Of a DNA stretch of 64,000 nucleotides, positions 31,645 through 56,354 are shown one piece after another. The stretch is from Cyanophora paradoxa CCMP329. Taxonomy: Eukaryota; Plantae; Glaucophyta. The notes under the pieces are model-generated. The model was not told the origin of the DNA and searched no databases. It saw nothing but the letters and a program-made list of their open reading frames with translations. The position numbers were made by a program, and so were the translations under genes. The stretch's first letter is position 1. Each line of letters starts with the position of its first letter. Location: the NCBI GenBank assembly GCA_004431415.1, contig QPMI01000059.1:1-64000 (forward strand), given 5' to 3'.

Positions 31645-33925
31645 CTAGAGCCGGCTCGAGCTCCCTTACTAGTCAAGCTTCAGGGAGAACGCTCAGCGTA
31701 GTCCGATGGTCTAGGGACCGCTATAAGAAAGAATGCTTCTCGCTAGCTTCGCAAGCTTCACTTCTTCGAGGGGCGGAGGGAGGGGTGGGCCCCGTGGCCA
31801 GTGGGGAGGGACGAGTACTAGTGGCCATAGAGTCTCCAGAGTAAGCAGCGAAGGTCTTCACTTCGAATTCGCTTCTGGCCTCCGACCAAGCAATTGCAAT
31901 CAGCCCCGCCGACCTTTTTGATAGTTTGATTGCCTAAGCTTCATTGCCTAAGCTTCACTTTCTTCGAGGGGCCGGGGGGGAGGGGGGGGGAGGAGGGGGA
32001 GGAGGAGGAGGAGGGGGGCGAGCTCGGGGAGGGGGAGGGCGAACGGGGAGGAGCTCGATATCAATCGCGAGGGGGTGCACGTGAGGGGGCTTGGGGTACC
32101 GCACTGCGGAACCCCCTGTACACCATGTCATGTACCTGCCTTCTGAAGCTTGAGCTTCAAATTAAATCCAAATCATTTCAGATTTTATTACGCCCTCTAG
32201 AATCTAGATCGATCTAGACCTCGAGCTCGATCGATTGATATCCGCGCCCTCCGAAGGCTTCGATCCAATGATCCCGGGTCCGTCCGTATTACCGTATCTG
32301 TAGTACATAGTACTACGCGTACAGAAGGCTGGCATATGCATGCGCAGCAGCTACCTGGTAGCTGAGGCTGGTACGTAAATATAAGTACACGATCAGCGGC
32401 CCGTGAGTCCCGTGGCTCTAGATCTGGCGGCTAGCCCAGTAGCCTCTGTATAGGGCGAGTTCCGCGATCGCGCGCGAGGACCGTATACGGGCCGGGCGCC
32501 CCCGGCCCCCCGCCGCCCCGCCGGCCCGGCGCCGGGCCGCCGGGCCAGGCCAACGTCGACTGAGCCTCGGCCGCGGAGCCTGACTCTGCCTGAGTCGACG
32601 TCGGAGGCCGTAGGGCCGGCGTAGGCCCAAGCTACCCGGTATTTAAGGCCGCCGGCGGCCCGGCGGCCGGCCGCGGGCCGCGGGCCGCCGCGCCGGGCAG
32701 CGCCGGCGCGCGCGCGCGCGCCTGTACTTCTCGCCTCCGGCGGCTCACTTTGCGTAGGATGGGCCCGGGGCAATGATACTAGTTCAAAAACAGTTTCAAA
32801 AGTTTCCCGTGGCTATATATTATCCAGGCTATACCGTAGTACCGTAGTACCAGGCCAATACCAGCCCATACGTAAACCGATGTACGAAATTACTACGAAT
32901 CCTAGTAATTAAATATGTGACGTCCAAGTTACCCGAATACGAGGCAAAAAGACCTCTTTGGAAAAGAAAAGAAGAAAAACAGAAGCGTCCTACCAAGTAC
33001 AATGGTGGTCGCGGACTCCGATCGCGATTTGCGTGTTTTCGCGACTCCTAGGACCCCGAATTCGATTCGATCCCGAGTGGCACGAATTCGAACTTGGGAA
33101 GTTCCACGAAGTTAACGTTGGCACGAAGTTGCCACGAACTCGTGGATGCCGCAGACTCCGCAGTGCGCACGGGGCAGCGCACCGCAGACTCCGCATGCGC
33201 GCGCAGCGCTAGCTGCAGGCTGCAGCCTGCAGTCCGCGGACGTCGCGATCGACTCTCCGGGACTCCATGGCCACCAGTGGACCACCACTGGACCAGCCTG
33301 GCAGGCCACCAGCCTGGCAGTGGCACCACTGGCACGGTGGCCGTCGGTTGGACGTCGGCGCCGTCGCCGCCGACTTGCCGCGGCCGGCCGGCGCCCCTCG
33401 GTGGCACGCCGATATCGATCGCGATCGATCCCGGCGATCCGGAATTTTCTAAGTTAATGCATATGCGGATTCCCGCGGAACTTCGGAACGACCCCGGAAC
33501 CCGGGACCCGGGTACCCCCGTCAGGCCGGGCCAGCCGCTGTCAGCTACCGGGTAGCCGCTGAGCAGCCCGCTGACCTCTAGCAGCCCCTAGCAGCAGGCT
33601 CAGTGCATGCGCAGCCTCGCAGCCCTCGCTACCGTAGTAATACGCGTACTGCTTGCAGCTGCTGCTGATCGGGACCGAGATCGCTGCGCGCCCGCCGGGC
33701 CGTGACTCCCGGAGCTTCGCGGCTAAGCTGAGATAAACACATCGGCGCTTCTCTCCCTGGGCCTCGCGACCGCCGAGTCGAGCGCAGCCGTCAGCGCCCG
33801 GTGTACATGTGCGCGAAGCTTCAGCTTGAGCGCGCGCCGATGCCAGCGGCCCGGCGGATTCGCATGCGCATTCGGAGCCCCCGAGGGCCCATGCATATGG
33901 CCGGGAGCCACTGCAGGCGCTGACC

Positions 33926-36900
33926 ATGACTGGCAATATCAATGCACCCGCGGCCGGCCGCGGCCGGCCCCAGCTTGGCGGCAGCGCGCCAGGCCTAGGC
34001 CTGAACGTTAACGTCGACGAGCCCTCGGCTGCAGCGATGGGTCCCGTGCGCATCACACCATTGCCAGATTCGGCGGATGATCATGATGGTGGGATGGATT
34101 CGGCCGCGGATCCTGCAGCTAGATCTGGCCAGGCCCACGTGCACGTGCGCTCGCCAGAGCCGAGCTCGACGTCCACGGCCGCGGCCGCGAGCGCCGCGCC
34201 GTCGGACCTGCCGCCCATCCGCGTGCTTTCCATCGGTGCAGCTCCGCGCGCCCGGCCCGAGAATCACTTGCTCGGCCCGCGCTGACCGCGCCGCGCGCTC
34301 GCGCGCGCACGCGCGCGCAGACGGCGGGGGCGGTTCGAATCCCCAGGCTCCGCTCGCGCCGGCGCCGGCGCCGGCCGCGCGCTGCAGCTGACGCCCCGCG
34401 CGAACCGCAGCGGAGGGCCTAGCGGCAGCAAAGATACTGCAGTGCGCCCTGCACATGCCCCGCCAGCCCGCCCCTCGCCCACCGCTGATCGTGAGCGCCC
34501 GCCCTGCCCGCAGGCACATCGCGGCTCAGACCGGCAAGGTACAAATCAAATTACTCTGCCCTCGCTTTTTCCGAAACCATGCCCGTGCCGAACCATCCAC
34601 AATTCCGCCCCCTCCACCGCGCCGGCGCCCTCCGCGCAGGCCGTGCACGAGCTCTTCGACGTCGTTACGGGTTCGAGACGCCGCGGGGCCAGATCCGCGC
34701 CCCCGCGCGCACGTGGCCGGACGTCGACGATGCTGATCATATGAGGCGCGCGCGCGCATGCACGTGCAGGGACGGGTATGGGATCGCTGGTCACGTGCGT
34801 CCTGTTCGGAATCCGCCCCGACGGCCGGCCCCTCGTCCCCGCCGCTCAGATCGTCTCCGCTCTCCTGACCAGGCGCCCCCCTCCTCCCCTCCTGACCCCC
34901 CCGCCTCCCCTGATCATGACCCAAACCCTCAGCTTGCCTCTCGTCTTTTCCAAGAAAAAGCGGTACCCACTCGTCTTCCACGGCTCCCCTGTAACGTCCA
35001 TCCTCACGGGGTACGACGCAGGGGGCCCGCTGCGCACCCCAGCGCCGCGCCCACGCCGCCTCGCTACAGCGAGGTACCCGGGCCCCGTAGACGTACCCCC
35101 CGCGCCGTCCCCTCCGATACCCCCCCCGGCCAGGGCCCGCTCGAGGGGGTACTGCGGGAAGCGGTGGGGGACCTGCGGCTCAGCGATCTCGCCGCCTTCG
35201 TGCGCATTTTTCGAACCCCAGGACCCCAGCATTTGTTTTTTTACCCCTCCAAACGCCCTCTACCCCCCATTCAAGGCGGTCTTTCCTGCATACGATCTGG
35301 AGGAAAGGAGTCCCGTGTTCTTTTCCTCGGTACGCCCTTTCGCTTAAGCTTCCGCCCCCCGCGGCCGACGCCCGGCGCCAGGCGCAGGCGCTCGCCTCGC
35401 CTGCGACCCACAACCTACTCCTCCGTGACGTCACGAGGGCGCGCCCGCCCCGCCCCGCCCCGCCCCGCCCCGCCCCGCCCTGCCGTCCATAACCAAGCTC
35501 AGCCGCGCGATGCTCTCATTTTCTAGATCTTGTATAGAAATTTTGCAAGTTTTAGAAGCCCGCACCGCCCACCCGCCCCGCCCGCTCCCGTTTTGAATTT
35601 GATCCGGGGCCGGGCAGGCGGTTGCGATCTCGGGGTCGCTCTTTAAGCCGGCACGGCTGAAGGCACCCGGCCTGTACGAGCACAAGGACGCCTCGTCCCT
35701 CCAGTTCTGGTACCCCCCCCCAGCCCCGCGCCACCACTACCCGTCCCGAATCCTTTCTTTCGCCTCGCAGGACCCTTCAGCGCAACCCGGCCGTCTTCGC
35801 CCATGCCGAGGCCGCGCGCCTCTTCCCGGGTACCTAATTTTCCCCCGCCCGTGACGTCACGGCGTCCCCGCAAACGCCGCCTGAAGCCGAGCCATCCCGG
35901 CTCGCGTCCCGCTCCCCCCCTCCCCAGGCCGCAGTCTGCTCATGCTGTCCATCGGGGCCGGTACCCATGAGAAATCGCTCGAGTGCGTACCCCCCCCCCT
36001 CCCGTGCTGCCTAGACTCGCGGAGCACTCTGATGGGCGCACGTACCACCCGCAGCCAGCGACAGGCCACCTTCTTGAAGGACCTGGGGTACCCCCCACGG
36101 CTTCCCCCCCCCCCCCCAAAGCTGAGCCTGGGTGCAGGTGGCTGGCGCCGTCCCTCGCCTCTGCCCTCGTCTCAGAGCGCACGGCGACCGCGAGCGAGGT
36201 GCGGGCGTACGCGTGCCGCACCAATACGTATACCCCCCGCTTCTCCCCCCGGGTCCGAACGCGTACCCCATGCCAGCTCCTCTCGGGAGCGCTGGGGGAT
36301 GACTTCGTGCGCTGCGCGCCGGCGCTGGCGCCCGGCATCGAATCGTGCGCCACGCTCGGCCGCAGCCCGCTAGCGCTGTACCCCTCCGCACTCCTTCCCC
36401 TCTGCGGTCCTATAATTAGCGGTCGTACGCGTACCCAGGCTGGACGGCTGGCGCCTGGCGGACATCGGTCAGGTGAACTCGTTCCTCCGAACCGTCGGCG
36501 AGCAGGTGCCCCTCCCTTTCGGCCCGGCCCGGCCCCTTCCTTGTAATTACGCGTACCCCTCCCTCCAACCGCAGTTGTCCGGCGGGGAGCTGCGGGAGCG
36601 GTTGGACGCGTTCGTCGCGCGTCTCGCGCGAGCCAGGCGCGTTCGTTTCGCTGCAGCCGTCGACATCGCTAAATAAAGCCAAATTCGAACCGTATGCGAT
36701 CGCAGCGAGCACCCGCGGGCGCTGGGCCGGCCCCACGCCGCCCTCCTCCCCACAGGCTACGCAGTGGCCCCCCTCCCGCCCGCCCCTCCGACCCAGGCGA
36801 GGGATTCGGTACCCCGCCGGTACCCCCGCGTTCGCTGAGGAGGGGTACGCAGGCGGCGGAGGTGCTCTCTGACACGCGACTCTTCGGCTCCTCGCGCCTT

Positions 36901-39900
36901 CGATTCGGTCCGCGCTACACGTCTACCCCGCGGCGCAATTGCAATTGCAATCCTCCTTTCGCTCGTACATATGAGGACCGCAGAAGGCGTCTCGTTCTCG
37001 GTCCCAGCGAATGGCGCCTTCTTCGGCGGCGACGATCGCGAACGAAGGCACGTCCTCCGCCCCATCTCAGGCGAGATCAGGGTGCGTACCCGGCCCCGGC
37101 CCCGCCCCCAGCTCCGTACCCCCGAGCGGCCCTTCCCCCCTTTCCAACTTGGTAACCATCAAGCTTCGACCCAGCCGGGCACGATGACCTGCGTCCTGGG
37201 CTCCGCCTTCTCGGGAAAGGTGCTTGCTCCCTGTACCCCCCCCCGGCCCTTAGGAAAGAAACCGGTCCCAGAGAGCCGAGAGGCTGCGCTGCAACTGGTC
37301 GAGAATCCTTAGAAAGCCCGACCCTTTAGAAAGCTGGCCGAGAACCGAACTGAGTGACTTTAAGGCTGTACATGTGCTGCAGACCGCGCTGCTTCGGGTG
37401 CTGGCGGACCGGCTAGCGCTGGTCGAGAACCCTTAGTTAGATTTAGAAAGCCCGACCCGTAGAAGGAAGAGAGGACAGAAAGCTCCCTGCTCCCTGCCCT
37501 CAGGGCCTCCCGGCCCTTAGGAAACCGGTCCCAAAGATCTAGAGCCGACCATGCTGCTGCGCGCGCTGGCGCGTGCTTAGGAGAGCCGAGGCGCGTGCTT
37601 AGGAAACTGGTGTCCGCCCGCAGACCGCGCTGCTTCGGGTGCTCGCGGACCAGTGCGGGGAACTGAGGAGGGCCGGCCACGTCGCCGGCCACGTCGCCCT
37701 GGACGGCAGGCCGTGCGCCCGCTTCATTCACCACCTCCTAGACTTCCTCTTGGCTTCCTTTCGTTTAAGCTTCCTCTTAAGCTTCCGCTCAAGATGGCAG
37801 GCCGTCCTCTTAAGCTTCCGCTCAAGACGGCTTAACATTAACATTAAGCTTCCTTATTAGTAAATGTCCAGGGCGCATTGGAACCTTAAGCCTCCTTTTT
37901 AGTAAATGAAAGGCCGGCCACGTCCCCCGTCGACGGCAGGCCGTCCGCGCCCTTTCATTCACTTCCTCTTAGACTTCCTTTCTTTTGAATGCAACTCTAT
38001 CTGATCTGATCTGATCTAATCCATATATTATACTTGTGTATCCAGCCCGTCCTTTCCTTGTTATATATATCCAATCATTAAGCTTCCACTTCACTCAAGC
38101 CTCCTTTCTTATTATATCCAAATACGTTTCTAATCCAAATACGTGTCCAGGCCGTCGGACGGGGGCGTCTTCGCGCGGCGGGTCGTCTTCGTCGCGCAAG
38201 AGGACTCCGACCACTACGGTACCCCCTCTTCGTTTTTCCTTCTCATACCCTCTACTTTCTTTTCGAATTCGCGCTCGCCCGCGATGACCCGCGATCTCCC
38301 GCCCGCCCGCCCCGCAGCTATGCTGACGGGTGCGCATGCGTATGCGCGGTGCGATCGAATCGAAATCGGTGTACGTGTTAAACGCGCCGGCGCCGCAGTG
38401 GAGGAGACGCTGCGCTTTGCGGCGCGGGTGAAGGCGCTTGCGGGGTCCGAGCGCGGCGACGGCGAAGGCGAAGGCGGCGGGGGCGATCGCGAGGGCGCCG
38501 GTGGCGCTGCGGCCGCGACCGACGCCGCCGCTCGCGTCCAGTCCGCCGCGCGGGTACCCCCCTTCCCTCCCCTTCCCCTCTCTCTTGCCCCCCCCCTTCC
38601 CTCTACTTCCCTTCTCAGACTCACGCCGTGCGCACGAAAACAAAAAGGCTCTGGGGCTCCTGCACGTGATGCGCAGCCGAGTGGGGAACCAGGCCGCGCG
38701 GGGCATCTCCGGCGGTGCGCGCGCGTTCGGGATCGACGGCTTCGGCTTCGGGATCGACGGGCCGTCGATCCCGACGCCGTCGATCCCGACTCGGCGATCC
38801 GGCCGACTGACTGATGGCGGGCCGCGCGCGTGCGCAGGCGAGAAGCGGCGCCTGACAGTCGCCGTGGCCCTCGTCGGGGTGCGTGCCAAGAAAGACGTGC
38901 ACATAATTATAAGAACTGTTATTGTTTGGAAGGGGCTTTATATGTAGAAGAGAAGATAGCAACTGAAATGAACAACGCGCCCTTATTATAAGGAGCCTCG
39001 GAGGCGATAAAAGCCGCGCTAGCGCTCGCTCGCCGGCGTGCGCGCTGCAGTGCCCGCCCGCCCGCCCTCGCGCCCGCGACCGCAGCCGCGGCCGCCGCCC
39101 CTGATTCGGCTGCGCGAGCGCAGGGCGGCAAGTCGGTCGTGCTGCTCGACCAGCCCACCGACGGTACGTTCACGATCGCGATATCGATGGCGGGCTCGGG
39201 ATCGACGTGTACGCTTAAAGCTAAGCTGAAGATAAGCTGATCGGGGCCATAAACTGAAGGCGTAAGCTTGAAGGCCATAAGCTTTATATATATATATAGT
39301 TAATTATAAGCGCTAAAGCTCGACCGGCGCGCTCTGCTCGGGATCGACGGGCCGTCGATCCCGACGGGGCTTTCGGGATCGACGGGCCGTCGATCCCGAC
39401 GGGGCTTTCGGGATCGACGGGCCGTCGATCCCGACGGGGCTTTCGGGATCGACGGGCCGTCGATCCCGACGGGGCTTTCGGGATCGACGGGCCGTCGATC
39501 CCGACGTCGACGCGGCTTTGTAAATCTGTGCGCAGGGCTGGACGCGCCGGCCTCTCTGGACCTCGTGCGCTGCCTGCGCGGCATGGCCGCCTCGGGCCTC
39601 TCCGTCGTCTGCTCCCTCCTGCAGCCGTCCTGGCGCGCGCGCCCGCCCGTCGATCCCGACGCCGTCGATCCCGAAAGATCCGTCGGGATCGACGGCCCGT
39701 CGATATCGATCCCGACTGATTTCCGTGCGATTTCCGCAGGGAGCTGTACGACCAGTTCGACCGGGCGATCGTGCTGGCGGCCGGGCGCTGCGTCTACCAG
39801 GGACCCGGCCGCGACGAGGCACCGCGCGCCCTCGAGGCCCTGGGGTACAAGAACGAGGATTCCCTCTCCCCCCCGGACTTCCTCGTCGCGGCTCGCCCCC

Positions 39901-42900
39901 CCCCTACCGCCCTGTCCCCTCACACCCTTCCACTCTCTAACAGGCCGCGGGCAGGCGGCGTCGCAGGCGGCGGAGTCGCCCCGCGCCGGCACCCGCGCAC
40001 CGGCCCCGGCGAGCCGCGAAATGCTTTCCGATGGGGGAGCGAGCAGCAGCGGCCGCGGCAGCGGCACTGGCGGCGCCGCTGCAGAGGTGCGACCTCGAAT
40101 TCCTTTTTCGGGATCGACGGCCTTGTCGGGATCGACGGCCCGTCGATCCCGACGTCGCCGAGTCGCTGAGGCGGTCCTGTACATGTCCCGCAGCGGTTTC
40201 TGTCTGGAGCCTACGCCAGGAACGCCGCCGCTCAGGCGCGCCGCCCCGCGCCGCCCCGCCCGCGCCGCCCCGCCCCGCCCGCCCCGCACCGCCCCGTCCT
40301 GCCCCGTTCTGCCGCCCCCCGAATTCAAACCAAGCGCCAGCGTGGCCGCACGGAGCTCTCATTTTCTTTGTGTAGAAAAGTTGCTAGTTCTTGCTGAACG
40401 CCCCTGACGAGAAAAGCTCTAGTTACTAGACGAGAAGTTACCTTCTTACTCGCTAAGCTGTTCTTGATGTTCTTGATGACCACTCTTAAAGCTTGACTAG
40501 TACTATAAAATTCTTTCTCAGTTGACGTTGTCATCGTACTCTGTGTCCTTTCGACTTCATATGACTTCGTTCGCAGTTCGCGCTGCTGTACGCGCGCTTC
40601 TCGCTCCTCGTCCTCCGCAACCGGCGACCCCTCCGGTCCCGCCTCATCCAGGTACCCCCGGTTACCGTTCGATCTATTTATAGTTCTTCTTTCGGCGCCG
40701 TTGCCCTTGTTACTCGCGATCGCGATCGATTTCACTGCCCTTTACGTTCTACACTTCACATTTCCCCGTGTACCCCCCCGACGGCCCGCGTCGTCTTCGA
40801 TTCGCAGGTTACGGTCATGGGCACCATCCTGGGCACGCTGCACTTCCAGCTCCCGGAGAGCGTCGAGGGCGTCCGCGCCCGCGTCGCCTACCTCCAGGTG
40901 GGAATATTCATAAGCTTAAGAGAAGGCTTTATATAGGAAGAAAGGGTCTATATATATATATATATATAGGGTCTCAGGGACGTATAAGGGTTTATATATA
41001 AAGTTCTAGACCCCTGCGGGTAGGAAAAGAATGATTTCTTTGAGCTTGCATGAGGCTCTAGGGGAGAGGATTATTACAAGGGCCGCCGCTCTGCCCTAGG
41101 AACCCGCGTTGCGTACCTCCTGGCCGCCTGGCCGTCAAGCCGTTCTGACGGCTTGACGGCTAAGAGTCTAAGGACCTTACAAGGGTTTATATAAGGGTCT
41201 AGACCCTGGCGGGTAGCTGGAGGAAGAGCCTCGGAGCCCCGCCCCGCCCCGCCCCGATCCGACAGGCTCTGACGGCTTGACGGCTCGCAGTCGGTCCTCC
41301 TTATGGCCGCGTTCATTGCGCTGTCAAAGGCGCGTCGGCCGTCCCTACGCCTCCGCTCGCTCGCGCCGCCTTAGCCGCCTCTCTCCGCCTTGGGTGTGGA
41401 GATAAACTACGAGCACCGCCTCCGTCTCCGCGCCTCCGTCTCGTCGGGATCGGGGGCCGCCCCTCTGACCCGAAAAAAGCTTAGCTTTAGGCTTTAAGCT
41501 TTAAGACTCGACCGGCGCGCTCTGCTTACAGCTGAGCTTAAACCGATGGCCTTAAACCTTAGCTTAGCTTTAAGACTCGAGCGCGCGGGCGCCCGTTCGC
41601 CCTCGACAGCTCTCACCCTAAGCTCTAAGGCCTCTGTTCGGGATCGACGGCCCGTCGATCCCGACGCCTTCGATCCCGACGGGGGCTGCTCTTCTGACCC
41701 GCGGCCGCCCCCCCGCCTCAGGTGGAGATGAACTACGAGCACCGGCGGGTGATGCACCGGCAGACGGAGGAGCGCATGTACCGTCCCGCCATCGTGCGCC
41801 GGCGCCCTGGCCCGCCCATAAAAAACTTAAAGCTTAAGCTTAAGCTAGCTTTCAATCTTTATTGAGGTCGTCCGCCCGCCCCCGCCGCCCGCCCGCGCCG
41901 CCCGCCCGCGTGCCCGCGCCGTCAGCGGCCAGCCGCCGACTGCAGCTGACGGCGGGCCCCGGGGCAGTGGGTGGCGGCCTACGTCGCATCCGAGCTCCCC
42001 CGCATCTTCATCGAGGTCCGCCCCCGTCCGCTTTGATTTCCCGCCGGGCCGCTCCGAGGCTCGGTGGCCGGTCACGGCCGCGGCCGCGGCCGCGCGCCAG
42101 ATGCTGCATCTGCGCTCTAACAATCTTCTTTTAGCGATCTTCTGCTCTTCTCCAGCGATGGTCTCTGTGTGTACCTGATGTCGTCTCGTTGCGCAGATGC
42201 TGATCTTCTCCGTGTCGGTATACTTCTGGGCCGGGCTGCAAACGGGCGGCGGGGCCTACCGCTTCGGCCGCTTCCTCCTCGTCGTGTTCCAGGCCCGCCC
42301 CCCGCGCCCTCTCCTATTCTAGATGTTTCTCTTTCTCTTTCTTTTATATATATATACCTTTTCATCATCTTGATTCGCACTTGATTCGTACTCGTCGTGT
42401 ACCAGGCCCGCCCCCGCCCTGCCCCCTTTCCTCTCCTTCTTCTTCTGTCTCTTATTCCTTGATTTGCTTGATTCGCACTTCGTTCTGATTGTTTCTTCGT
42501 CCGCCCTGCGCATCCGCTTCCGCAGCTCGCCGTGATTTCGGACGCGACCGTCTTGTGCGTCGCGACTTCTAAGCGAGGGGCCGGGGGCAGTCCGGCGCTA
42601 GCAACGCTAGTTCTGCGACATCGGGCTCGGCAAGCTCGAGCTTGAGCTTGAGCGCGGCTCCGGATCGGGCGCCGCGCCGATCATGTGACTGACCTGACCT
42701 GGCCCGCCCTCCGCCCTCCGCGCAGCACCATGAGCCAGCTCATCCCGACGAAGGAAGTGCGATCGAAGCTCCGGCGCCGACGCCGGCGCCGGCGCCGGCC
42801 CACATGTACAGATCCCACGGATCCCTCTAATCGTGATCGCGATCGCGCGTTCGCAGGTCTGCGCCACGCTGGCCCCTATTCTACCCGCCATATTCTTCAT

Positions 42901-45900
42901 TTTCGGCGGTTCGCGCGCATTTCACAGACTTGCGATGCCTTGCTTTATATATCCGCTCGCGCGCCCACGCCCACTGGGCCACGCCGGCTTTAAATTTCCT
43001 CCGCGCAGGGCTGCTGGTGCCTCGGTCCGACCTGCCACCCTGGTGGCGTTGGGCGCCGTACGCCTCCTACTTCTCCTACGCCCACGAGGCCCTCTGCATA
43101 AACGGTACCCCCTCGCCCTCTTCCCCCCCCCACGCCCCGCTTGGCCGCCCGCTGAGGACGGGTTCGGGCAGAACTGTGGGACTTCGAAATCCCGGGCGCG
43201 CCTCCTCCTCTCGATCCTGGGCCGGGACCCGGCCCGGGCCCGGGCCCGGGCCCGGGGGGCCGCCCTGCGCCCGGGTTCCCGCCCCAAGAGCCCCCGAATT
43301 TCCAGGGCCCGGCCGTACCCCCCAGCTTCGGAGCGCGTACCCTCGAGGGCTTCGGCATGCACGCCACCGAGGACTGGTAAGGCCCCCTCCCGTACCCCCC
43401 ACCCCACCTCGGAAGAACGTAGGGATCTCGGCCCCTCCACCCCCCCCCCCCGCCCCCCACCTCTCCCCCCTTACCCTCCCCCCCCGCCTCCCCACCCCAC
43501 CCACCCACCTCCTCCCCCCGGCCGGAAAGAACGTGGCTGCTGGGGCGTTGTGCTCCCCTTCCCCCCTCCCCTCCCACCCCCCCTCTCCCCTAGGCCTTCC
43601 CCCTCTACCACGCCCCCCCCTCCCTTCGCCCTGCAAAAACCCTCCTTCCGACGCCTCTACCCCCCTTCGTCCTCCTAGGTACTGGAAGAACGTGGCGATC
43701 TCGGTCTGCTACTGGGTCGTCACGCTTACCTTCGCCGCCCTCGCGGCGTCCTTTGTTCGCCCGAGGCGGGCATTCCCGCGCATGCTTAAGCTTCGAATTC
43801 CTGCCCCGTCTTCCCTCGACGGCGCCCGCCGCCGCTCTGTATCCGCCTCCGTCGGCCCCGTCGTCGGCGCCGGTGTCGGCGTAGGCGGCGCCGGGGCGGC
43901 GAAGGGGGGAACATTAGCCGTGAAGAGGCCCCCGACCTCCCGGTCGGGGTCGCGCTCGCGTCTGGGCGTCGCGGGGCCCCTCCCGGCCCTCACCTTCACC
44001 GGCGTCAGCTACGAGATCGACGGCCCCCGCCAGGGTGCGCGGTTCTTATTTATAACTAGTTTGTTAACTAGTTGACTATTCAACTAGTTAACTGGCTAGT
44101 TACTCGCTAGTGAACTAGTTAGTTAGTTCCCGGCTGGCCGGTCGGATCGAGCGTTGCGTCACGCAGGGGCGGCGCGGCGGCGGCTGCTGGCGGGAGTGAC
44201 GGGCTTCGTGCGTGGCGGCTCCCTCACAGCCCTCATGGGCTCTTCCGGGGCCGGCAAGACGTGCGCTTCCCCCTACCCCCGCCCCCCCCCCCCCCCCCCT
44301 TTTTAGAAGCAGCTTAGAGACGCTTGTCCCCCCCCCCCCCCCCCCTTCCCCGCCCCCTTTAGAAGCCGCTTAGAAACGCTTGAAAGCCGTTGCACATGTA
44401 AAGCTCTTCATATATATGCCGGTGCCGTCCGATCCAGGCCCAGGCCCAGTCAGCCCCCCGTGCTAGCGCTCTTAGAGGTCAAACCGTCAAACAGAAAAGC
44501 ATGATGCCAACCGTTCCGCACTTCCGCAGGACACTGCTGGACGCGCTGGCTGGGCGGAAGACGGTGGGGTCCCTGACCGGGGAGATCCGTCTCAACGGGC
44601 GGCCCGTCGATCCCCGTACCCTCCCCCGCGTCTCCTCCTACGTCGAGCAGGCCCGTACCCCCCCCCCCCCCCCGCCCCCCCCCCCCTCTCAACCTCTGAC
44701 GCCGACGCCCGCTCCGCAGTTCGACCTGCTGTACCCCTCCATGGTGCGTTCTTCGACCTCCCCCCCCCCCTCCCCCCCTCCCCGACTCCCACCCCGCCCG
44801 CCCCGCCTGGATCGAGCCGGGGCGGCCGGGGCGGCCCGCGCAGACGGTGCGGGAGGCGGTGGTGATGTCGGCGCTGACGCGGCTAGACGCCGGCCTCCCC
44901 CGCGCCGCCAAGCTCGAGGCGGTGCGCTTTGAATTAGATCCCTAGATTCTAGATTCCTCTAGATTAAATAGATTCCTCTAGGTTCCTAGATTCGATTGCC
45001 TCTAGGTTCTTAGATAGGTTCCTCGAGCTCTAGGTCCCTGCCTTCTTGAACGATCTAGATTAGATTCCTCTAGATTCCTTGCTTAAGCTTCCTTCCTGGC
45101 GGCGCGCACCTCGTTTCTCCTCCTACTCTTCGCTCTCTTACCTTGTTTGTTTGCTTCCCCTACCTAGGCGGAGGCGGCGCTGGCGGAGCTGGAGCTGGCC
45201 CCCTTCGGGGAGCTCGTCATCGGCACCCTCGAGGGCGGCGGCATCCCCGTCGAGGTGCGCCCTCGCCGAGTCGCCGAGTCGCCTGAACGTTGTGAAACGT
45301 GACTATAGCTGCGAGCATTATAATAACAGTGGCTATGTCCTTTGTATGGATCAGACATTCGGTAATGATCACACATCTGCAGCTGGGCCTCTAGATCTCC
45401 ATGGGATTCTGAGGGCCTCTATAGATCTAGATCTGTATGGGCGATCAAATCAAAGGAAACACTGCGGCATCCCTTCTCTTCGCTTCCCCTCCTCCCTCTG
45501 AGTCTCTTTTTCCTTCAGATGCGGAAGCGGACGTGCATCGCCATGGAACTCGTACCCCGCCCGCCCCTCCTGTTCCTGGACGAGGTGCGGTCGCACTGGA
45601 CCGGGCCGGGGCCCTCTAGATCTCTCCCGCAAAGCTCAACTGCAAGCTTAAGCGCCCTTGCCTTTTAAATAGAAGCCTCTTAATTGATTTGTCGGCCGGT
45701 TGGCCGGCTCGACTCAGAGCTAAATATAACGCGCCCGCAGCCGACGACGGGGCTCGACTCGTCGGCAGCGCTCCGCATCGGGCGGGTGCGCATGCGCGCG
45801 CGGCCGCGTCCTGGCGGGGGCGGGGCGGGGCGGGGCGGGACCTGGGGCAGAGCGGGGCGGGGCGCGCGCCCCCTCCCCCTCCGCCCCAACGCCCCCCCCC

Positions 45901-48900
45901 CCCCCCCCCCCCCCTTCCCCTCCTCCTTCCCCTCCCATCCCCCGGGCCCCACCCGTCCTGCCTGCGAAACCGACGTGCCTGCTGCGGCTGACGCGCCTGC
46001 GCGCGCAGCTGCTGCGTCGGATCGCGTCGGGCGGGCGCGCGGTGGTCGCCACCGTCCACCAGCCCTCCCAGGCACGCCCGCCTCCCCGCCCGCCCGCCCT
46101 CCTTTCCCCGTACCCCTCGCCTCCGCCTTGCTCGCAATGAGCCGTCGTGCGCAGCCGCTCTTCTTCCTGTTCGACTACCTGATCCTCCTGGGCTCCGGCG
46201 GCCTCCCCGTCTTCTGCGGTGCGTACCCCCCCCCCCCCCCCCCCGCCAGCCTCCCCGCTCCGCCTACGCTAACAAATTCGATCTGTTTGTAGGGGAGCTG
46301 GGGGAGCGCTCCTCCTCGGTGCTCTCCTTCTTCGCGTCGCTGGGCTACGCGATGCCGCCCCTCCGCAACCCCGCCGACTTCATCATCGAGGCGCGTGCAT
46401 ATATTCTGTTAGTTTGAGCGTGCCCCAAGCTTAAACGCGGCGGCTCTCAACATCTAGATCAGCTCTCAGAGTTTTTGAGCGGCGGCGGATCTAGATAGCT
46501 TAAGGTTGAGCGCCGGCTCTTTACTAAGTAAGATCGTTCTAAGTCTGTCGTCGTTTCAGAGTCTGACCGGGTCGGAGCCGCGCCTGCGCAGGTGGCGGGC
46601 GGGCGCGTGCGGAAGGGATCGCGATCGGGGGCGGCCGGGGCGGACGGGGCGGACTCCGCGGGCGGGCGGGGGCGCCGGCCGCGGCCGTGGATCGCGAGGG
46701 GGCGCCGCCGGCGCCGGCGCCGGCCGCGAAAAACCTGCGCGCCGCGACGGAGGTCGCGGCCGCGTTCCGCGTGCGTTTTCCCTATAAGATTTCTATAAGA
46801 TTTCTACAAAGTTTCTAATAGAAAGGCTTTTATAGCTATAAGGTTTCTATAGGGTTTCTATAGGGTCTCTGTGAGGCGGCCGAGGTCGCGGCCGCGTTCC
46901 GCGTGCGTTTTGGTCTAGAAATTCTCTATAAGATTTCCTACAAAGTCTCCACAAGGTTTAAGGTTCCTATAAGGTTTCTGTAAGGCGGCGGAGGCCGTCG
47001 CCCCTCCGCCCCCGGCCCGTCCCGCCGCGCCCTCGGCCTTTACCGACCGGACGGCCGACCGGACGGCCGGCGCCAGGCGCCTTTACCGACTTGAGGGTTT
47101 CTAATAGGTTTCTATAAGGGTTCTTCTATAAGGTGTATATAAGGTCGCCGCCGTGTTCCGCGTGCGCTTTGGACTAGAACGTTTCTGTAAGGTTCTATAA
47201 GCTTAAGGTTTTTATAAGGTTCCTATAAGGTTTCTATGAGGCGGCGGAGCCTCAAGAGGTCGCGGCCCCTCCGTCCTCGGCCCGGCCCGCCGCGCCCTCG
47301 GCCTTTAATTTACCGACCGGACGGCCGGCGCCGGCCGCGCAGGCGAGCCCGCTGGCCGAGGCCGCCGCGTTCCGCTTGCATTTTAATCTAGAGCGTTTCT
47401 GTAGGGTTCTTATAAGGTTCTTATAAGGTTTCTATATGAGCGTTCTTATATGGTTTCTATAGCGTTCTTATATGGTTTCTAAGGCGGCCGCGCAGGCGAG
47501 CCCGCTGGCCGAGGCGGTGGCGAAGACGATCCGCGAGCTGGACGTGTCCCGTGCGCCCCGTCCCGCCCCCGCCCCTATAGCGTTTCTGTCACTTCTATAA
47601 GGCCTAGGTCTATAAGGTTCTATATCTATACGGTTCGGTTCACTGTGGCCGGCCGCTCACGATCCCGATCACGCTTCACAGTACTAGTGCTGGCGGGCGA
47701 GGCGCTTATATAGACGTTTTCTAATATAAATTAAAGTTTCTATAACGTCTGTAAGGTCTATAAGATTTCTAAAAGGTTTCTATCTATAAGGTGCTCACGC
47801 TCAGAGGCTTCGCTCGCAGTGCTGGCGGCGGAGGCGCCGCGGCCGCCCCGGCGGCTGGGCCTCCTTCGGGAGACGCTCCTCCTCGCCGACCGGCGCCGCC
47901 GCTGGCTCTGGCGCATGCGCGCCGCCCCCCTCGCCCGCCTCCTCAGGCGCGCGCCCTCCCCTCTAATTTTCCCGCCCCCGCCCCCGCCATGCCCCGGCCC
48001 GTCGACGTCGCCGCGCCTGAGACGCTAGCGCTGGGGCCGGCCCTCTCCCCGCCCCGCCCCACTCCCGCCCTGCCCTGTCGCTGCGCCTGAGACGCTATCG
48101 CTGGGGCCGGCCCTCTCCCCGCCCCGCCCCACTCCCGCCCTGCCCTGTCCTGAGACGCTAGCTAGCCCGGCCCGCTAGCAACCGCGCCCGCCCCTTCGCC
48201 TCGCCTGATTATGAGACGCCGCTTGCAATCGTGTGCAGCACCGTCGGCATGGCCCTCGTCGCCGGAACGACCTGGTGCGCCCCTTCCAAATATTTTGAGC
48301 ATGTCCTGCCGCCGTCCGCAACGTCGATGGGCGGTCGCGGCCGTCGGCTGAGCTTTATATAATTAATTTACAATCTGGGCTGTTTCCCTTTCGATTATAA
48401 ATGGACCTTAGCACCCGCAATCCGTCTGCTTTATATTTGCTTACGTATTATGAGTTTAACGCGGGCGGGGCAACCAGGTACGGGCTGGGGCTCTCTCAGC
48501 CCCAAGCCCGCCTCCGCCTCTCGGTCGTCTACGTCCTCACCCTCTTCGGCCACATGCGGTCCGCCCTCTCGCCCGCCCGCCTCGCCCCGCCCGCTATAAA
48601 TACTACTAGCTGTACTATAGAGGGCTCCTAGCTATAGCTATAAATATATACTATATCTCGCTCTTTGTGCATATGCGGTCGGCTCGCCCTCCCCGCCCCG
48701 CCCCGCCCGCCCCGCCCCGCCCGCCCCGCCCCGCCCCGCCCGCCCTGGCTGAGCAGGGGCCGGGCCGCAGCGGCATTGCCGACATTTCGAGCTACTTTTC
48801 CCTTCGCGAGGTCCGACCCGCTCGAGCTCGCCCCCTTTCCTCAATTGAAGGCTCCCCCCCCCCCCCCCCCCCCCCCCCCAGGTGTACTACCGGGAAAGGG

Positions 48901-50387
48901 CACAGGGTGCGATGCTCCGCCCTTCGCTAAGCGTCCGCCCCGCCCGGCCCGGCCCGGCCCGGCCCGGCCGGGCCGGGCCGGCCGGGGCCGCCCGCCCGCG
49001 CCATGCCAGCGCCCGCGGCCGCGTCCTGGCGTGACTCACCGTGGCACGTCCGCGTCCGCCCGCAGGCATCGTCAGACCCGCCGCGTGGCACGCCGCGAAC
49101 TTCGTGGTGCGCACTCGTACCCCCCGCCTCTCTTCCACCCCCCGCCCAGTAACGGCGTACCCCCCCCCCGCAGGTGAACGGGCTGTTCAACATGTCGACC
49201 ATCACCCTCTTCGTTCTCATCGCGTTCCCCCTCTGCGGCTTCCGGCTCGAGGAGGGGTACAGCCCCTTTCGCCATCGGTTTGGGCCATTCCCAACGACCC
49301 CGAACCGCCCCGGAACCGCCGCAGGCGGCTGGGGTACGCGATCGTCCTCATGTGCGTCTGGACGCTCTTCGTGACGTCATTCACCGAGTACCTCGCCATG
49401 GCCCTCCCGGTACCCCCCGTCTCTTCCTATCCTGTACCCCCTCCTTTCGGGCGAGCGGGCGGGGCGGGGGCGGCAGGTGGCGCCCGTGGCGATGTCGATT
49501 GGGGCCACGGCCCTCGCCCTGGGGGCCTTCTTCGCGGGATTCATGGTACCCCCACCCACCCCCCTACCCCCCCAGCCCTTCCGTTCCCTCTGGTCGACGC
49601 TGACGGGGCGGGGGGGGCAGATCCCGGCGCCGGACATCCCGGCCGCCTGGAGCTGGCTATACTACATCCTCTGGTTCAAGTGCGCCGCTAATAGAAACCT
49701 TAGAATAAATTGTATCGAACCTTATAGGAAACTGTATAGAAAAGTTATAGAAACCAAACTTATTGCTCACATCCCCGACATCCTATGGTTCAAGTGCGCC
49801 GCTTATATCAGGGCCTCGGATTCGCCACATCCTTCAGTAGAATGAACCTTACAGAGCCTTATAGAAACCTTATAGATAGATACCTTATATAGAGGCCTGC
49901 AGCTGCGGCTTTAGGCGGGGCCGGCCTAACAGACTTCCCTCGCGCTCTCTCTCTTTCGCAGGTACCCCCTGGAGGGACTGGCCGGCAACGAGCTCGGGGG
50001 CCTGATCCTCCCCGACTGCCCGCCCCCGTGCGCCCGTCCCTGTCCCTGGATTTATTTATGGGCAGCTAGATTCTTCGATCCAGCTCCCCGGCCCGGGCCA
50101 GCCCGGCGGGCCGGGCGCGGCCTTCTCGGGATGGGGCCGGGCTCTCATAGTCTGGCAGACAGGAAACCTTGTAGAAACCTTAAGCTTACTCCCCGGGCCG
50201 GACGCCTGGTCTGCGCAGGCAAGCGTCCCGGGGGCTGTGCGCCCCCGACGGGGACGCGATGCTGGCCCGGTACGGCCTGGACGCCGGCCGCCGCTGGCAG
50301 AACGTGGGCGTCCTCCTCGCCTACCTCGCGTTCTTCGAGCTGCTGAAGGCCCACGCCCTCCGCCGCATCACCTGGCTCCGCCGCTGA
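33926..50387 (+). CDS. Patatin-like (catalytically degenerate) domain fused to a full-size ABCG/PDR-type transporter (NBD1-TMD1-NBD2-TMD2), dozens of exons
   Basis: Patatin part: RVLSIDGGGAEG, HELFDVVTGTGMGSL, VFPAYDL, RNPAVFAHAEAARLFP, LLMLSIGAG. NBD1: VLGSAFSGKT, VFVAQED, ISGGEKRRLTVA, LLDQPTDGLD, SLLQPSWELYDQFD. NBD2: LTALMGSSGAGKTTLLDALAGRK, YVEQFD, GIPVEMRKRTCIAMEL, LFLDEPTTGLDS, TVHQPS, NPADFIIE. TMD motifs LPPWWRWAPY and IPAAWSWLYY..KYPLEGLAGNEL. TGA at 50385-50387. The ABCG identity is firm; the fusion is less so. Confidence 0.8.
39338..39504. repeat. Five tandem copies of a 27-bp palindrome (35-bp period) inside an ABCG intron
   Basis: TCGGGATCGACGG-G-CCGTCGATCCCGA separated by an invariant CGGGGCTT; copies start at 39338, 39373, 39408, 39443, 39478. 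Confidence 0.93.
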
Positions 50388-52849
50388 CGCCCGCGGCCGG
50401 CGGGATCGACGGCTTCGGCGTCGGGATCGACGGCCCGTCGATCCCGAACGTCGCGATCGGTTGGTTCGATCCCGAACGTCGCGTCATCTCCGCTGACGTC
50501 CCCGCCCCGCCCCCAACCCGGCGGCCTTCGGATTCCCCGAGTCTACCGCCCACGCCCCCCCTCGGGACCTCGCCCCCATCCCTCGGGCTCGCTTTGATTC
50601 CTTCCGGCCGCTGAGCGAGAGCGGCCGGTCCGGGCCTCCTCGCCCTCTTCGCAACCGCCTTCCCCTCCGCCCCGGCCGGGCCCCACGTGCACCCCGGCCC
50701 ACGTGCACCGCGGGCATTTAATTTATCGCACGTTCTGCATTGTTCCATCCCTGTATATTTATCTTACTTATCGTGCTGTACATGCGATCCGCCTGATATA
50801 TAGCAGGCGCATGCACCCATTCGGGGCGGCGTTCAACGTTAACGGGTCGACCGTAAGGAGCTGCAGGCTTGCAGCCGGTGTTTGTTTTCTCCTGCGGGTA
50901 CGCGTACGCGTGCTGTACCGTAATGTACGTCGCGATAAATCTCCGAATCCATAATTTCCATGGCATGCATATGGTCCAGCATGGACGCGTGCTGACTGCC
51001 GCGATCGATGTCGAAACCGAATAATTAAGGCGGTCCCCGACGTTGAATGGATTCCGAAGTTCGACCATTGCATGCTGGTTAAATAAATACGGCTTCTTCG
51101 CTGCGGGAGCCGGAGAGCTGTGATAACGCAGAAGCCGGCCGCGGCGGGAGTGAGCTCGACGCTTTAACGTTAACGCCGCTGTTGCTGCTAAATCTAGAGG
51201 CGGGTTTGATTGCAATTGGGGGATTTCGCGGTCGGCCTGAGCTCGAAGGCGGCATCTGCGAGGCCGTCCGAGCCTGCATAAGCATATAAGCATTTGTATA
51301 AATCGGTCAGACATTGATACATGTGCCGTGGTGTATCAATGCGACGTCCACTTTTGCAAAAAAAAAATTTGTATAAATCGGTCAGCAATCATATGATGAT
51401 TACAAAGTAAGCTTGAAGCAGTCTTCCATCTGTTTGCTTGCAATTGCCTTCAAAGATCGATCAACTGCAACCTCGCCCTGCTTCTCCGATCCAAGCTTGA
51501 TGTGAAGCCCGCGGCCTGCAGTCGAGGCGCCGAAGTCCGACTTGCACAGCCGGCGCCCACGGGCGCGTCCCGCGTGGCTGATTTCGAACTCGAATTCGAG
51601 GCTACGATCTTCGATTCGGATCCGGAACTTCGATTGTGAACAGCGGAGGTCATTGCAAGTGGCGGGTCGACGTCGACGTCGACGTCGCGATCGGCTGCAG
51701 CTGCGCATGCACACGCGCGCGCGAACTCACATCAGGCGGCCCGGCGGGGTCTGCGCAACAAATCCCTTCAAAGTTATAATTGATGTTTAATTTCACCCGT
51801 CGCGATCGCGTCCTTATATAATTAGGCAACTTGTACATAAACGTTTGCGGTTTTGTCGCTGGCCATGGGCGGGAAGGTGGAATTTGAATTTCTGACGTCA
51901 TTCGAAGAAACGGGGCCCTGGCCTGCAGCTGCGACTAGTACTACGGTACTTGGAGCTGCCCGCCGATCGCGACGCCGCCGATGGAGCCTGATCGTGAGGC
52001 CTACAGGTGCGCAGCGCCGATCGAATGCGCTGGCGCCGCAGCAGAGGACATCGATGGCGTCGAAGTCGGTGGAGGTCTGCTGGCCATGGGGACCACTGTT
52101 GCAGCACGCGCAGCAGCAGCTGGCGGCGCCGGCGCCATCACGGCGTCCTCGGATTGGAACCGAGGATGCCTGGGCGATTGTTCGAAGCTCCAACTCGACC
52201 GCTTAATTTCCGCTTTAATTCGCTTAATTTCCGCTATTCCGAGCAGGAGACGGACGCGCGTTCCAACGCAGTGTGCGCCAGCGTATATGCTGGCGCTACC
52301 GTAGTACGCGACCGCTTTCTTCCTAATATGCGTCGTTGTCGCCGTCAACTTTGCCGTCGCGCGTTGCCAACAATGCCAAGTCGCTGACATGTACAGTCGG
52401 CCAATTTGGTGACTCAATCGAGTCAGTCAGACACTCATGACTCAGCGTCATGAGTCATGATCGATATGACTAGTACTCAGTGACGACTCTCACTGACGAG
52501 TCACTGACGACGATATCAGATCTAGATCTAGACCCTCTGACTTCGGCTGTCAGTGGCGACTCAGTGCACGTGCCAACGTACTACGGTACTGGCAAGCCTT
52601 GAAGGTGACCGTCGCCGGTCCGTCGGACAAGTCCTGAGTCCTGAGTCCTGACTCCCCGAGCCTATAGGCTATAGCTAGCGGTATATATAGCACATAATAC
52701 TGTGCATACAGACTCCAGTAGTAGTACTACGGTTACTACGGTTACTACGGTAGCAGGCGCGCGGAAGTCTAGATCTGGCGCCGGCGCATCGCCGCGCATG
52801 GCAGGCCGGGCCTCAGTGGCCTGATCATGAATATAATTCAATATATACT

Positions 52850-53788: not shown

Positions 53789-56354
53789 CAAGATCCGTGC
53801 TCCTGCGGAGCACTAAGTACGGCGAAGCCTCGCGGACGCCCTCGCGGCTGTCACAGTAGGCCTATAGGGCACTGGCCAGCGGCCTGGCCGATCGCGAACA
53901 GCTTTCTGGTTGGAAGCTGGCCGGCTGACGGCCAGTCCAGCTACCGCTGGCCGGCTAGAGGAATATAACTAGAGGAATATTAATGTACTGAGGAAATAAA
54001 GGGAGGCCGGAGCAGGTTGAGATTAGAGGAGATGAATTATATATAATATTGTTGAGAGGGAGGCCCGGGAGGGGCAAGGTTCTCGCGGCCAGGCGCATGC
54101 ACAGAGCTTGCGAATCGCTTAAACAGAATCTTGAATGCATATAGCTATAGCATCGATGTGCGGGGCTGCGGAGCTCGAGGCGAGGGCGCGCGGAAAGATG
54201 TGCAGGTCCATGCAGGATCGAATTTTCGGGGTCGGCTGGGTCCTCGCGGCCCGTCGCATACGCAAAGCGTGCGGAAGACTTTGCCTACATCTTAAATGCT
54301 TATGCTATCGTTCCGCGCATGCGCCGCGGCGTGGGCGCGCGGAAAGATGTCAGGGCGCGTGCAGGATCGAATTTTGGCCGTCGGGTACCTTCCTGCGCTG
54401 TTCCGGCTCCGAAAAGCGGATTTCGGGGGTGCGCAGGCCCTGCTATGTCCATGCGCGCCAGTACGCATCGATTGCGCGCGTCGCGGGACCGGGCGGGACC
54501 GGCTAGCGCTGGATCAAATTTTCGGCCGACTCTTCGCACTGGAGCGTCGACGGCGCTTGAAATCGAGCTTGCGGCGATGCGCTCGCCCTCGCGCGGCATT
54601 CTGTATCGTTCTGGGGCGTCCCTGGCGCGATTTCGTCGCGGGACCGGGCGGGACCGGGTCCCACCTTCTGACTCGGACTGCATTTGTCGGAGGTTAAGTA
54701 CCGGAATTGATCCAGAGGGAAATTCGATTTTCGCGCGACGCCCACGGGCGAGCGGTCGTCTTAGGGGAGCCACGACGCTAAAAATGGATCTAGAGAGGTC
54801 TGTGGGGGTTAGGGTAGCTGAGTCATTAGCGGCAATCGCGTCCGTGTCGAGGCAGAATTAATAATTCGTCCTCGAGGGAGTGCGACGCGGAAATTATTTA
54901 GCAGGGGGATCTTGAGTGGAAAAAAGGTTAAAAAAGGAATTTATATCGGCGGTTTTTGGGTTTGAGACAAGATCCGTGCTCCTGCGGAGCACTAAGTACG
55001 GCGAAGCCTCGCGGACGCCCTCGCGGCTGTCACAGTAGGAGGCCAGCTGGACCCGGCCCGCCCAGCTGCATGGCCGGGTTTCGCCGGCTTGGCACCGGCC
55101 ATGGGCTGGCCCGCTTTAGCCAGCTCGAGGGAGAGCTGGCTGGCCAGAGAGCAATGTAATGAGGAGAGGGAATATATAATTAACTAGGGGAGACCGGAGT
55201 TGAACCGGTAACGCTTGCTTTTAACTGGTGGAGCAGATTGAGAGGAGATTAACTATATAATATTGTTGGGAGGGAGGCCGCCGGGCCTGGGAGGGGCGAG
55301 GTTCTCGCGGCCAGGCGCATGCACAGAGCTTGGGAATCGCTTAAACAGAATCTAGAATGCATATAGCATCGATGTGCAGGGGTGCGGAGGCAAGGGCACA
55401 CGGAAAGCTTTGCAGGCCTGGCCAGGATCGAATTTTCGGGGTCGGCTGGATTCTCGCGCCCTGTCGCATCTCTAGAGTTCGCGAAAAGCTTGACAAAGAT
55501 CTCAAACTACTGTTGTAGGGATGCGCACGCGTGAGGATGCGAGGGCGCGCGGAAAGCTGTGCAGGTCCGTCCAGGATCGAATTTTCGGCGTCGGCTGGGT
55601 CCTCGCGGCCCGGCGCATTTAGAGACCGTGCGGAATGCTTTGTCTACATCTCAAATGCTTATGCTATCGTTCCGCGCATGCGCCGCGGCGTTGGCGCGCG
55701 GAAAGCTGTCCAGGTTTGTGCAGGATCGAATTTTTGATGTCCGGTACCTTCTTGCGCTATTCCGGCTCCGAAAAGCAGATTTCGGGGGTGCGCAGGCCCT
55801 GCTATGTCTATGCGCGCCAGTACGCATCGAATGCGCGCCTCGCGGAACCGGCCGGAACCGGCCGGATCAAATTTTCGGCCTACTGTTCGGACTGGAGCGT
55901 TGACGGCGCCCGAAATCGAGCTTGCGTCGATGCGCTCGCCCTCGCCCGTCACTCTTTATCGTTCTGGGGCGTCCCTGGCGCGATTTCGTCGCGGGACCGG
56001 GCGGGACCGGGTCCCACCTTCTGACCTGGACTGCATTTGTCGGAGGTTAAGGACCGGATTTGATCCAGAGGGAAATTTGATATTCGCGCGACGCCCACGG
56101 GGGAGCGGTCGTCTTAGGGGAGCCAGGACGCTAAAAATGGATCTAGAGAGGTGTGTGGGGGTTAGGGTAGCTGAGTCATTAGCGGCAATCGTGACCGTGT
56201 CGAGGCAGAATTAATAATTCTGCCTCGAGGGAGTGCGACACGGAAATTATTTATCAGGGGGGATCTCGAGTGGAAAAAAAGGTTAAAAAAGGAATTTATA
56301 TCGGCGGTTTTTGGGTTTGAGAAAGAGGCTTCGCCTGAAAGAGGCTTCGCCTGA
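53789..56354 (-). mobile_element. Non-autonomous Helentron/Helitron2-like element, dimer (E3; halves join at 54967/54968)
   Basis: Same termini as E1 and E2 (CAAGATCCGTGCTCCTGCGGAGCAC ... GAGGCTTCGCCTGAAAGAGGCTTCGCCTGA on plus). The left half is almost identical to the E1 halves; the right half is a different variant. Confidence 0.85.

Follow-up and report, generated by a model that had tools for sequence, protein, structure and literature searches.

A putative fusion of a non-catalytic patatin-like domain with a full-size ABCG transporter in the glaucophyte Cyanophora paradoxa

The DNA analysed here (hereafter the window) is a stretch of 64,000 nucleotides of Cyanophora paradoxa CCMP329, positions 1 to 64,000 of the forward strand of contig QPMI01000059.1. 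On its plus strand it carries a multi-exon open reading frame (ORF) for a patatin-like protein, which extends from ATG 33926 to 36636, and, downstream of the patatin exons and on the same strand, a gene for a full-size ABCG transporter, which ends with the stop codon TGA at 50385-50387. The better-supported, though unproven, reading of this sequence is that both belong to a single gene (33926-50387, +; ~16.5 kb), in which a dead patatin-like domain would be joined, through some 50 residues of Pro/Ala-rich linker, to the first nucleotide-binding domain (NBD1) of a transporter built of two halves, each made up of a nucleotide-binding and a transmembrane domain (NBD-TMD). According to this proposal, removal of the GC-AG intron 36637-36705 would eliminate the publicly annotated stop codon, the 103-nt linker exon would then be read in frame 2, and the 44-nt GT-AG intron 36809-36852 would be removed in turn; the former intron is supposed to be spliced out in most transcripts. 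On balance we slightly favour the fusion as the main product of the locus, and favour it more distinctly if the case of mixed isoforms is counted with it.

The window is glaucophyte nuclear DNA and corresponds to contig tig00000227 of the public annotation. The patatin part of the locus is covered by the public AUGUSTUS model tig00000227_g19796.t1 of Cyanophora paradoxa in EukProt (387 aa; P0001 below), produced by an AUGUSTUS/BRAKER1 pipeline whose models, as their authors state, "will require additional manual curation" (PMC6704402). P0001 exceeds the cut-off of the Pfam family PF01734 (Patatin; 35.2 bits vs 27.7, E=1.9e-8), matches potato Pat17 (1oxw, E=8.4e-12) as well as CapV structures in the PDB, and can be aligned over its whole length with three stand-alone patatins (315-336 aa, 27-31% identity). 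Single patatin exons gave no Pfam match, since these pieces (4-35 codons) are too short. In a HMMER scan of 1.84 billion representative proteins with the stop-free stretch 34745-35344, comprising three patatin exons, the sole true matches were P0001 itself and P0002, a truncated paralogue of 261 aa on tig00000788 (gene g4092) that is 58% identical to P0001, while P0003-P0005 were low-complexity matches; a metagenome scan returned no matches. The AlphaFold model of P0001, derived from a 5-sequence alignment, has a mean pLDDT (predicted local distance difference test) of 50.7, a quality too poor for fold comparison.

Laid back onto the DNA, P0001 yields 18 exons and 17 introns; the genome as a whole has 9.2 introns per gene, with a mean intron length of 86 bp (PMC6704402). 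Exon 3 of the public model (34411-34490) is demonstrably an error and should be divided into 34411-34441 and 34514-34538 (...KIL, then QHIAAQTGK): this split matches the sequence of P0002 as well as the spacing, free of gaps, in the homologues, and the error in g19796 (window positions 34411-34639) adds 16 spurious residues to the patatin domain. Three start codons are conceivable, namely ATG 33926, the first in the ORF, ATG 34037, which corresponds to the start of the paralogue (MGPVR), and ATG 34094, chosen by the annotators.

The question of one gene or two concerns the junction, between the last patatin exon and NBD1. The stand-alone homologues end where the candidate donor lies, and the patatin domain is thus complete at 36636. 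The donor itself (CAG/GCGCGT) belongs to the same AG/GCGC class as those of the introns at 34873 and 35439, and this class is real in the patatin gene, since the joins made by both of these introns match the homologues without gaps. From here two splice paths lead in frame into the transporter. In the first of them, Model A, exon 36575-36636, intron 36637-36705, exon 36706-36808 and intron 36809-36852 are followed by exons 36853-36907, 36984-37081 and 37175-37219; the first-pass annotation had proposed the joins 36636 to 36706 and 36808 to 36853, and the arithmetic of both proved exact. The second path, Model B, is an addition to that proposal: it uses a canonical GT donor at 36641 with the same acceptor and continues in frame 1, the 44 nt of 36809-36852 being kept as exon. 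Other combinations of splice sites are not viable. On the far side of the junction, the exon 36853-36907 ends with ...SRLRF and the exon 36984-37081 reads EGVSFSV...GEIR, so that RLRF+EGVSFSV parallels ALTFTGVSYEI of the second nucleotide-binding domain (NBD2); judging by this counterpart, the first strand of NBD1 requires an exon ending in ...RLRF.

Codon usage was used to choose the frame of the linker exon. The test, trained on P0001 and one other ORF (~700 codons) and run in a leave-one-out manner, recovered the correct frame in 13 of the 14 exons. Applied to 36706-36808, it selected frame 2, that of Model A, by 0.39 bits per codon; this margin is greater than that of any of the 14 introns (maximum 0.28) and was attained by 18 of 300 presumed non-coding windows and by 5 of the 45 GC-rich ones, that is by 6-11% of non-coding sequence. 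The log-likelihood of the linker was -5.31 in frame 2 vs -5.71 in frame 1, the frame of ATG 36694, where the GC content of third codon positions (GC3, 0.69) is lower than that of second positions (GC2, 0.84), a non-coding pattern. Downstream of the TAA, frame 2 lacks an ATG as far as 36808. Should the linker exon be translated in this frame, the transporter would be without a separate start codon and its translation would have to begin in the patatin ORF.

Several observations weigh against a fusion. In the public AUGUSTUS/BRAKER1 annotation, the patatin gene stops at TAA 36674. The search of sequencing runs found no run recorded as RNA that contains the locus; X1 and X7, the two possible RNA runs, gave no spliced transcript over the junction and only one contig, of 303 nt, at 33817-34119 (over exon 1). 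X2 and X3 are genomic DNA, colinear with the locus, and apparent joints in the contigs of the runs were discarded as splices, being low-complexity matches of 20-22 nt. The 5.8-billion-protein collection held no transcript-derived fragment of the patatin C-terminus (P0001:250-387). At 44 nt, the intron 36809-36852 would be shorter than all others of the gene, which measure at least 50 nt, and the codon test dealt with a small sample and an exon of low complexity. Finally, no fused homologue was met in the protein searches, which reached up to 677-721 aa, and no patatin-ABCG fusion in the literature searched.

The locus might instead comprise, as annotated, two separate genes, a dead patatin ending with ...VDIAK at TAA 36674 and an ABCG gene starting from ATG 36694 and read in frame 1 through 36694-36907, with no 44-nt intron. 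We regard this arrangement as a serious competitor, although a clearly less probable one than the fusion. It agrees with the stop of P0001, with the stand-alone state of every relative outside Cyanophora (~320 aa) and with the GC content of 36637-36705, which is 54% vs 70% in the other introns of the gene; ATG 36694 does open a frame that, with both introns kept, runs into NBD1 and is free of stops up to 36907. The close spacing of the two genes would then reflect the dense packing of C. paradoxa genes, which lie end to end with overlapping untranslated regions (UTRs; PMC6704402), the 5' UTR of the transporter overlapping the patatin gene. However, the first-pass annotation correctly placed TAA 36674-36676 inside AATAAA (36672-36677), with ATG 36694 following 17 nt past the stop, and 17 nt are too short for a 3' UTR and a promoter. 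Two genes would also leave a consensus GTACCC donor and a GCAG acceptor unused within the coding N-terminus of the transporter, and would require translation of the linker in frame 1 in spite of its non-coding codon pattern. The 12-codon tail that P0001 carries beyond the donor does not look coding either: its GC3 is 5/12 vs 0.83 in the coding sequence (P=0.0015). As to AATAAA, it was dropped as a polyadenylation signal, for the window contains 20 copies vs 16.3 expected; occurring at chance frequency, it carries no weight either way, and the next plus-strand copy near the end of the ABC gene lies ~700 nt beyond its stop. ATG 36694 shares its frame with the ABC part, as the first-pass annotation claimed, only as long as the 44-nt intron 36809-36852 is kept; once that intron is removed, the two are out of frame.

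The same stop, AATAAA and ATG all lie inside the intron 36637-36705, and the locus might accordingly make both products, its removal giving the fusion and its retention a free dead patatin, possibly polyadenylated inside the intron. With the TAA in frame, retention yields exactly the annotated protein of 387 aa, and each of the two readings is viable by itself; a non-canonical GC donor, moreover, may be weaker than a GT donor. On the other hand, neither the runs nor the protein collection supplied a transcript in support of such an alternative, there is no sign of regulated retention, and AATAAA is statistically unsupported, so we hold joint production of the two forms to be quite unlikely. 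Returning to the fusion, it is the splice class of the donor, the position of the domain boundary, the codon frame and the lack of an ATG in the linker that make the first-pass proposal plausible, against the public stop at the TAA and the missing spliced transcript.

That the patatin domain has lost its activity is suggested by its motifs. The oxyanion or phosphate-binding box, DGGGxRG in general and DGGGIRG in the homologues, reads DGGGAEG here and DGGAAEG in P0002, its Arg being replaced by Glu; the nucleophile elbow GxSxG (GTSTG in the homologues) reads GTGMG in both Cyanophora paralogues, with Gly in place of Ser. The Asp of the DG[GA] motif is likewise gone: L-[IV]-D-G-G-V-x-A-N-N-P of the homologues aligns with S-L-Q-F-W-T-L-Q-R-N-P, which sets QFW (35699-35710 region) opposite DGG and Gln opposite the catalytic Asp. 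The first-pass annotation had described a complete patatin-like motif series with altered sites; the Pfam match, DGGGAEG and GTGMG bear this out, but KDAS, which it took for the DGG position, sits five residues upstream of the dyad position and does not correspond to it. Since Arg, Ser and Asp are all replaced, we infer from the alignment that the domain is probably non-catalytic, and the case for a pseudo-enzyme is stronger than originally claimed, the more so as the first two motifs are altered in P0002 too. For the GxGxG box as such there is a precedent in the plant pPLAIII patatins, which reportedly keep lipase activity (PMC4253999, PMC7031755).

The loss of all three residues, together with very low expression, could also mean that the patatin part has become a pseudogene in decay, or serves as an untranslated leader, ahead of an ordinary ABCG gene. 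This we consider highly improbable: some 19 exons are open, with correct phases and a normal codon bias (GC3 0.83), the non-catalytic patatin blocks are conserved in the alignment, and a paralogue that is 58% identical retains the same substitutions.

The transporter was identified mainly by direct reading of its motifs. Two NBD-TMD halves, the NBD preceding in each, follow one another in one reading frame, as is characteristic of the ABCG/PDR type, in the order Walker A (37199), Walker B (39136), TMD1, Walker A (44238), Walker B (45567), H-loop (46051) and TMD2, up to the stop at 50385-50387; this agrees with the first-pass identification of a full-size PDR-type ABCG protein. The Walker A of NBD1 is encoded by the exon 37175-37219 (PGTMTCVLGSAFSGK) and split with the next exon; its Q-loop lies in an exon at 38191 and a degenerate signature at 38837, and its Walker B, VVLLDQPT at 39136, has Gln in place of the catalytic Glu. 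NBD2 is canonical (Walker A 44238, Walker B LLFLDE 45567, H-loop 46051). The last helix of TMD1, the linker between the halves and the first strand of NBD2 are contained in a single exon, 43680-44018. Profile searches contributed little: one short exon piece scored 24.3 bits against ABC2_membrane, below the cut-off of 26.9, the other ABC exon pieces gave no Pfam match, and PDB searches with these pieces, which are too short, were blank; tblastx between the two ABC halves produced mainly low-complexity noise and two genuine short matches. The coordinates of the locus are collected in Table 1.

Table 1. Features of the patatin-ABCG locus, in window coordinates
Feature	Start	End	Strand	Basis
Exon 1, low-complexity N-terminus ending in the beta-strand IRVLSI	33926	34235	+	
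Microexon of 12 nt, encodes DGGG of the glycine-rich box	34321	34332	+	spacing equals that of DGGGIRG in homologues
Exons 34411-34441 and 34514-34538	34411	34538	+	paralogue P0002, homologue spacing
Nucleophile elbow GTGMG, at the start of exon 34770-34872	34769	34783	+	
GC-AG intron, donor CAG/GCGCCC	34873	34932	+	join ungapped vs homologues
Second GC-AG intron, donor AGG/GCGCGC	35439	35617	+	join RDVTR/AVAISG ungapped vs homologues
Catalytic-Asp block, exons 35618-35709 and 35771-35829	35618	35829	+	homologue alignment
Last patatin exon, C-terminal helix ...ARLARA; stand-alone homologues end here	36575	36636	+	
Candidate GC-AG intron (CAG/GCGCGT...GATCGCAG/C)	36637	36705	+	
Pro/Ala-rich linker exon, 103 nt, frame 2 SEHPRALGRPH...QARDS	36706	36808	+	
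Candidate intron of 44 nt, donor TCG/GTACCC (the commonest of the gene), acceptor GTACGCAG/G	36809	36852	+	
Start of NBD1, three exons (36853-36907, 36984-37081, 37175-37219)	36853	37219	+	
Remaining ABCG gene	37220	50387	+	

Some further features of the locus deserve mention. At least two of the 17-19 introns of the patatin gene are GC-AG introns with an AG/GCGC donor, which is an unusually large share. Many introns in 34963-36574 begin with GTACCC and have GTAC or ACGCGTAC 5-25 nt ahead of the acceptor; end-to-end complementarity was tried as an intron signature and dropped, the observed value being reached in 57 of 500 shuffles. The DGGG microexon 34321-34332 is flanked by introns of 85 and 78 nt; AEG, which completes the DGGGAEG box, comes from the next exon (34411-34441). 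In the transporter gene, the exon that follows Walker A (TALLRVLAD...) occurs twice, ~240 nt apart, at 37383-37420 and ~37623-37720. The first copy meets a stop after ~17 codons and the second continues with ...GHVALDGRP, as in an ABCG NBD; the doubled exon is either a decoy duplicate or an alternative exon pair. A near-palindromic 19-mer, GATCGACGGCCCGTCGATC, is found at 10 places in 38752-50443 (e.g., 40130, 41642 and 50425), with 0 expected by chance; every copy falls within an intron of the ABCG gene or within its 3' UTR, and at 39342-39500 five of them are arranged in tandem with a 35-bp period. The 19-mer has the look of a repeat that forms hairpins or of a MITE-like element (miniature inverted-repeat transposable element). 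Elsewhere in the window, long ORFs on both strands at 14100-16900, 54300-54900 and 56900-59600 have near-identical translations (...SNAYAIVPRMRRGAGARKDV...PPSDSDCICRRLSTGIDPEGNSIFA...), which indicates a dispersed repeat family in its lower-GC parts.

Substrates of full-size ABCG/PDR transporters include lipids, sterols, cuticle precursors and xenobiotics. If fused to such an exporter, the dead domain might still bind a lipid or an acyl chain at the cytosolic face of the membrane and hand the ligand to the exporter, or else regulate it, the first ATP site being degenerate (Walker B D-Q); whether in sensing lipids or in feeding substrate, such a role is purely inferential. A more elaborate scheme, in which a CapV/patatin-derived pseudo-enzyme would serve as the N-terminal sensor of a ligand (lipid, acyl chain or nucleotide messenger), with retention of the 69-nt intron switching between tethered and free forms, seems rather unlikely. 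Provided that the fusion is real, a module for substrate recruitment or regulation that is built into the exporter itself could be studied in a tractable, naturally occurring protein, with a bearing both on substrate uptake from the cytosolic leaflet and on the regulation of the degenerate first ATP site in ABCG/PDR proteins; it would also add to the examples of pseudo-enzymes that have been put to new use in binding. In the public Cyanophora models the locus is divided, perhaps wrongly, and at least one exon is misplaced, so that a survey of domain architectures which relies on these models would overlook the fusion. Should the genes be separate, what is left is only a pair of dead patatin paralogues, one of them beside a transporter, and is of modest interest.

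Among known patatins, plant pPLAIII proteins such as Arabidopsis PLP9 ("probable inactive patatin-like protein 9") resemble the Cyanophora domain in combining the patatin fold with a change of GxSxG to GxGxG (PMC4253999, PMC7031755), and GTGMG conforms to their GxGxG esterase box. The "probable inactive patatin-like protein 9" family is also the ESM-Atlas cluster nearest to P0001 by language-model features (score 0.96); sequence searches gave no significant pPLAIII match to P0001, and the likeness is one of motif and language-model features only. Most pPLAIII members, however, keep the Asp of DGG and reported lipase activity (PMC7031755), whereas in Cyanophora Asp is replaced by Gln and Arg by Glu; in addition, pPLAIII proteins are stand-alone, unlike the proposed fusion.

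Bacterial CapV-like patatins, lipases of CBASS activated by cyclic GMP-AMP (cGAMP; NF041079), have the same domain boundaries and length as the Cyanophora domain. Outside Cyanophora, the closest sequence relatives are P0006-P0008 (~320 aa, 27-31% identity), and these reach 160-207 bits against NF041079, while P0001, with 57.3 bits, falls short of the equivalog cut-off of 200. The Cyanophora gene differs from CapV in being eukaryotic and intron-rich, in the loss of all catalytic residues and in having no cyclase or CBASS context. For a lipase fold that works without its nucleophile, ABHD5/CGI-58 can be named, a lipid-binding regulator of a patatin lipase; this is an analogy only, as ABHD5 has the alpha/beta hydrolase fold and acts in trans on ATGL, not as part of a transporter.

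As for the transporter half, known full-size ABCG proteins open with a short unstructured N-terminus before NBD1, and none with a patatin domain is described in the literature searched. In other respects the Cyanophora protein agrees with the PDR-type ABCG transporters of plants, fungi and protists: it shares with them the reverse topology (NBD-TMD twice), the ABCG-type Walker A and a putative ABC2-type membrane domain, as well as the asymmetry of the ATP sites, expressed here as D-Q in the Walker B of NBD1 and D-E in that of NBD2. The fusion, if real, would thus be a variation on a known type of transporter rather than a new kind of system.

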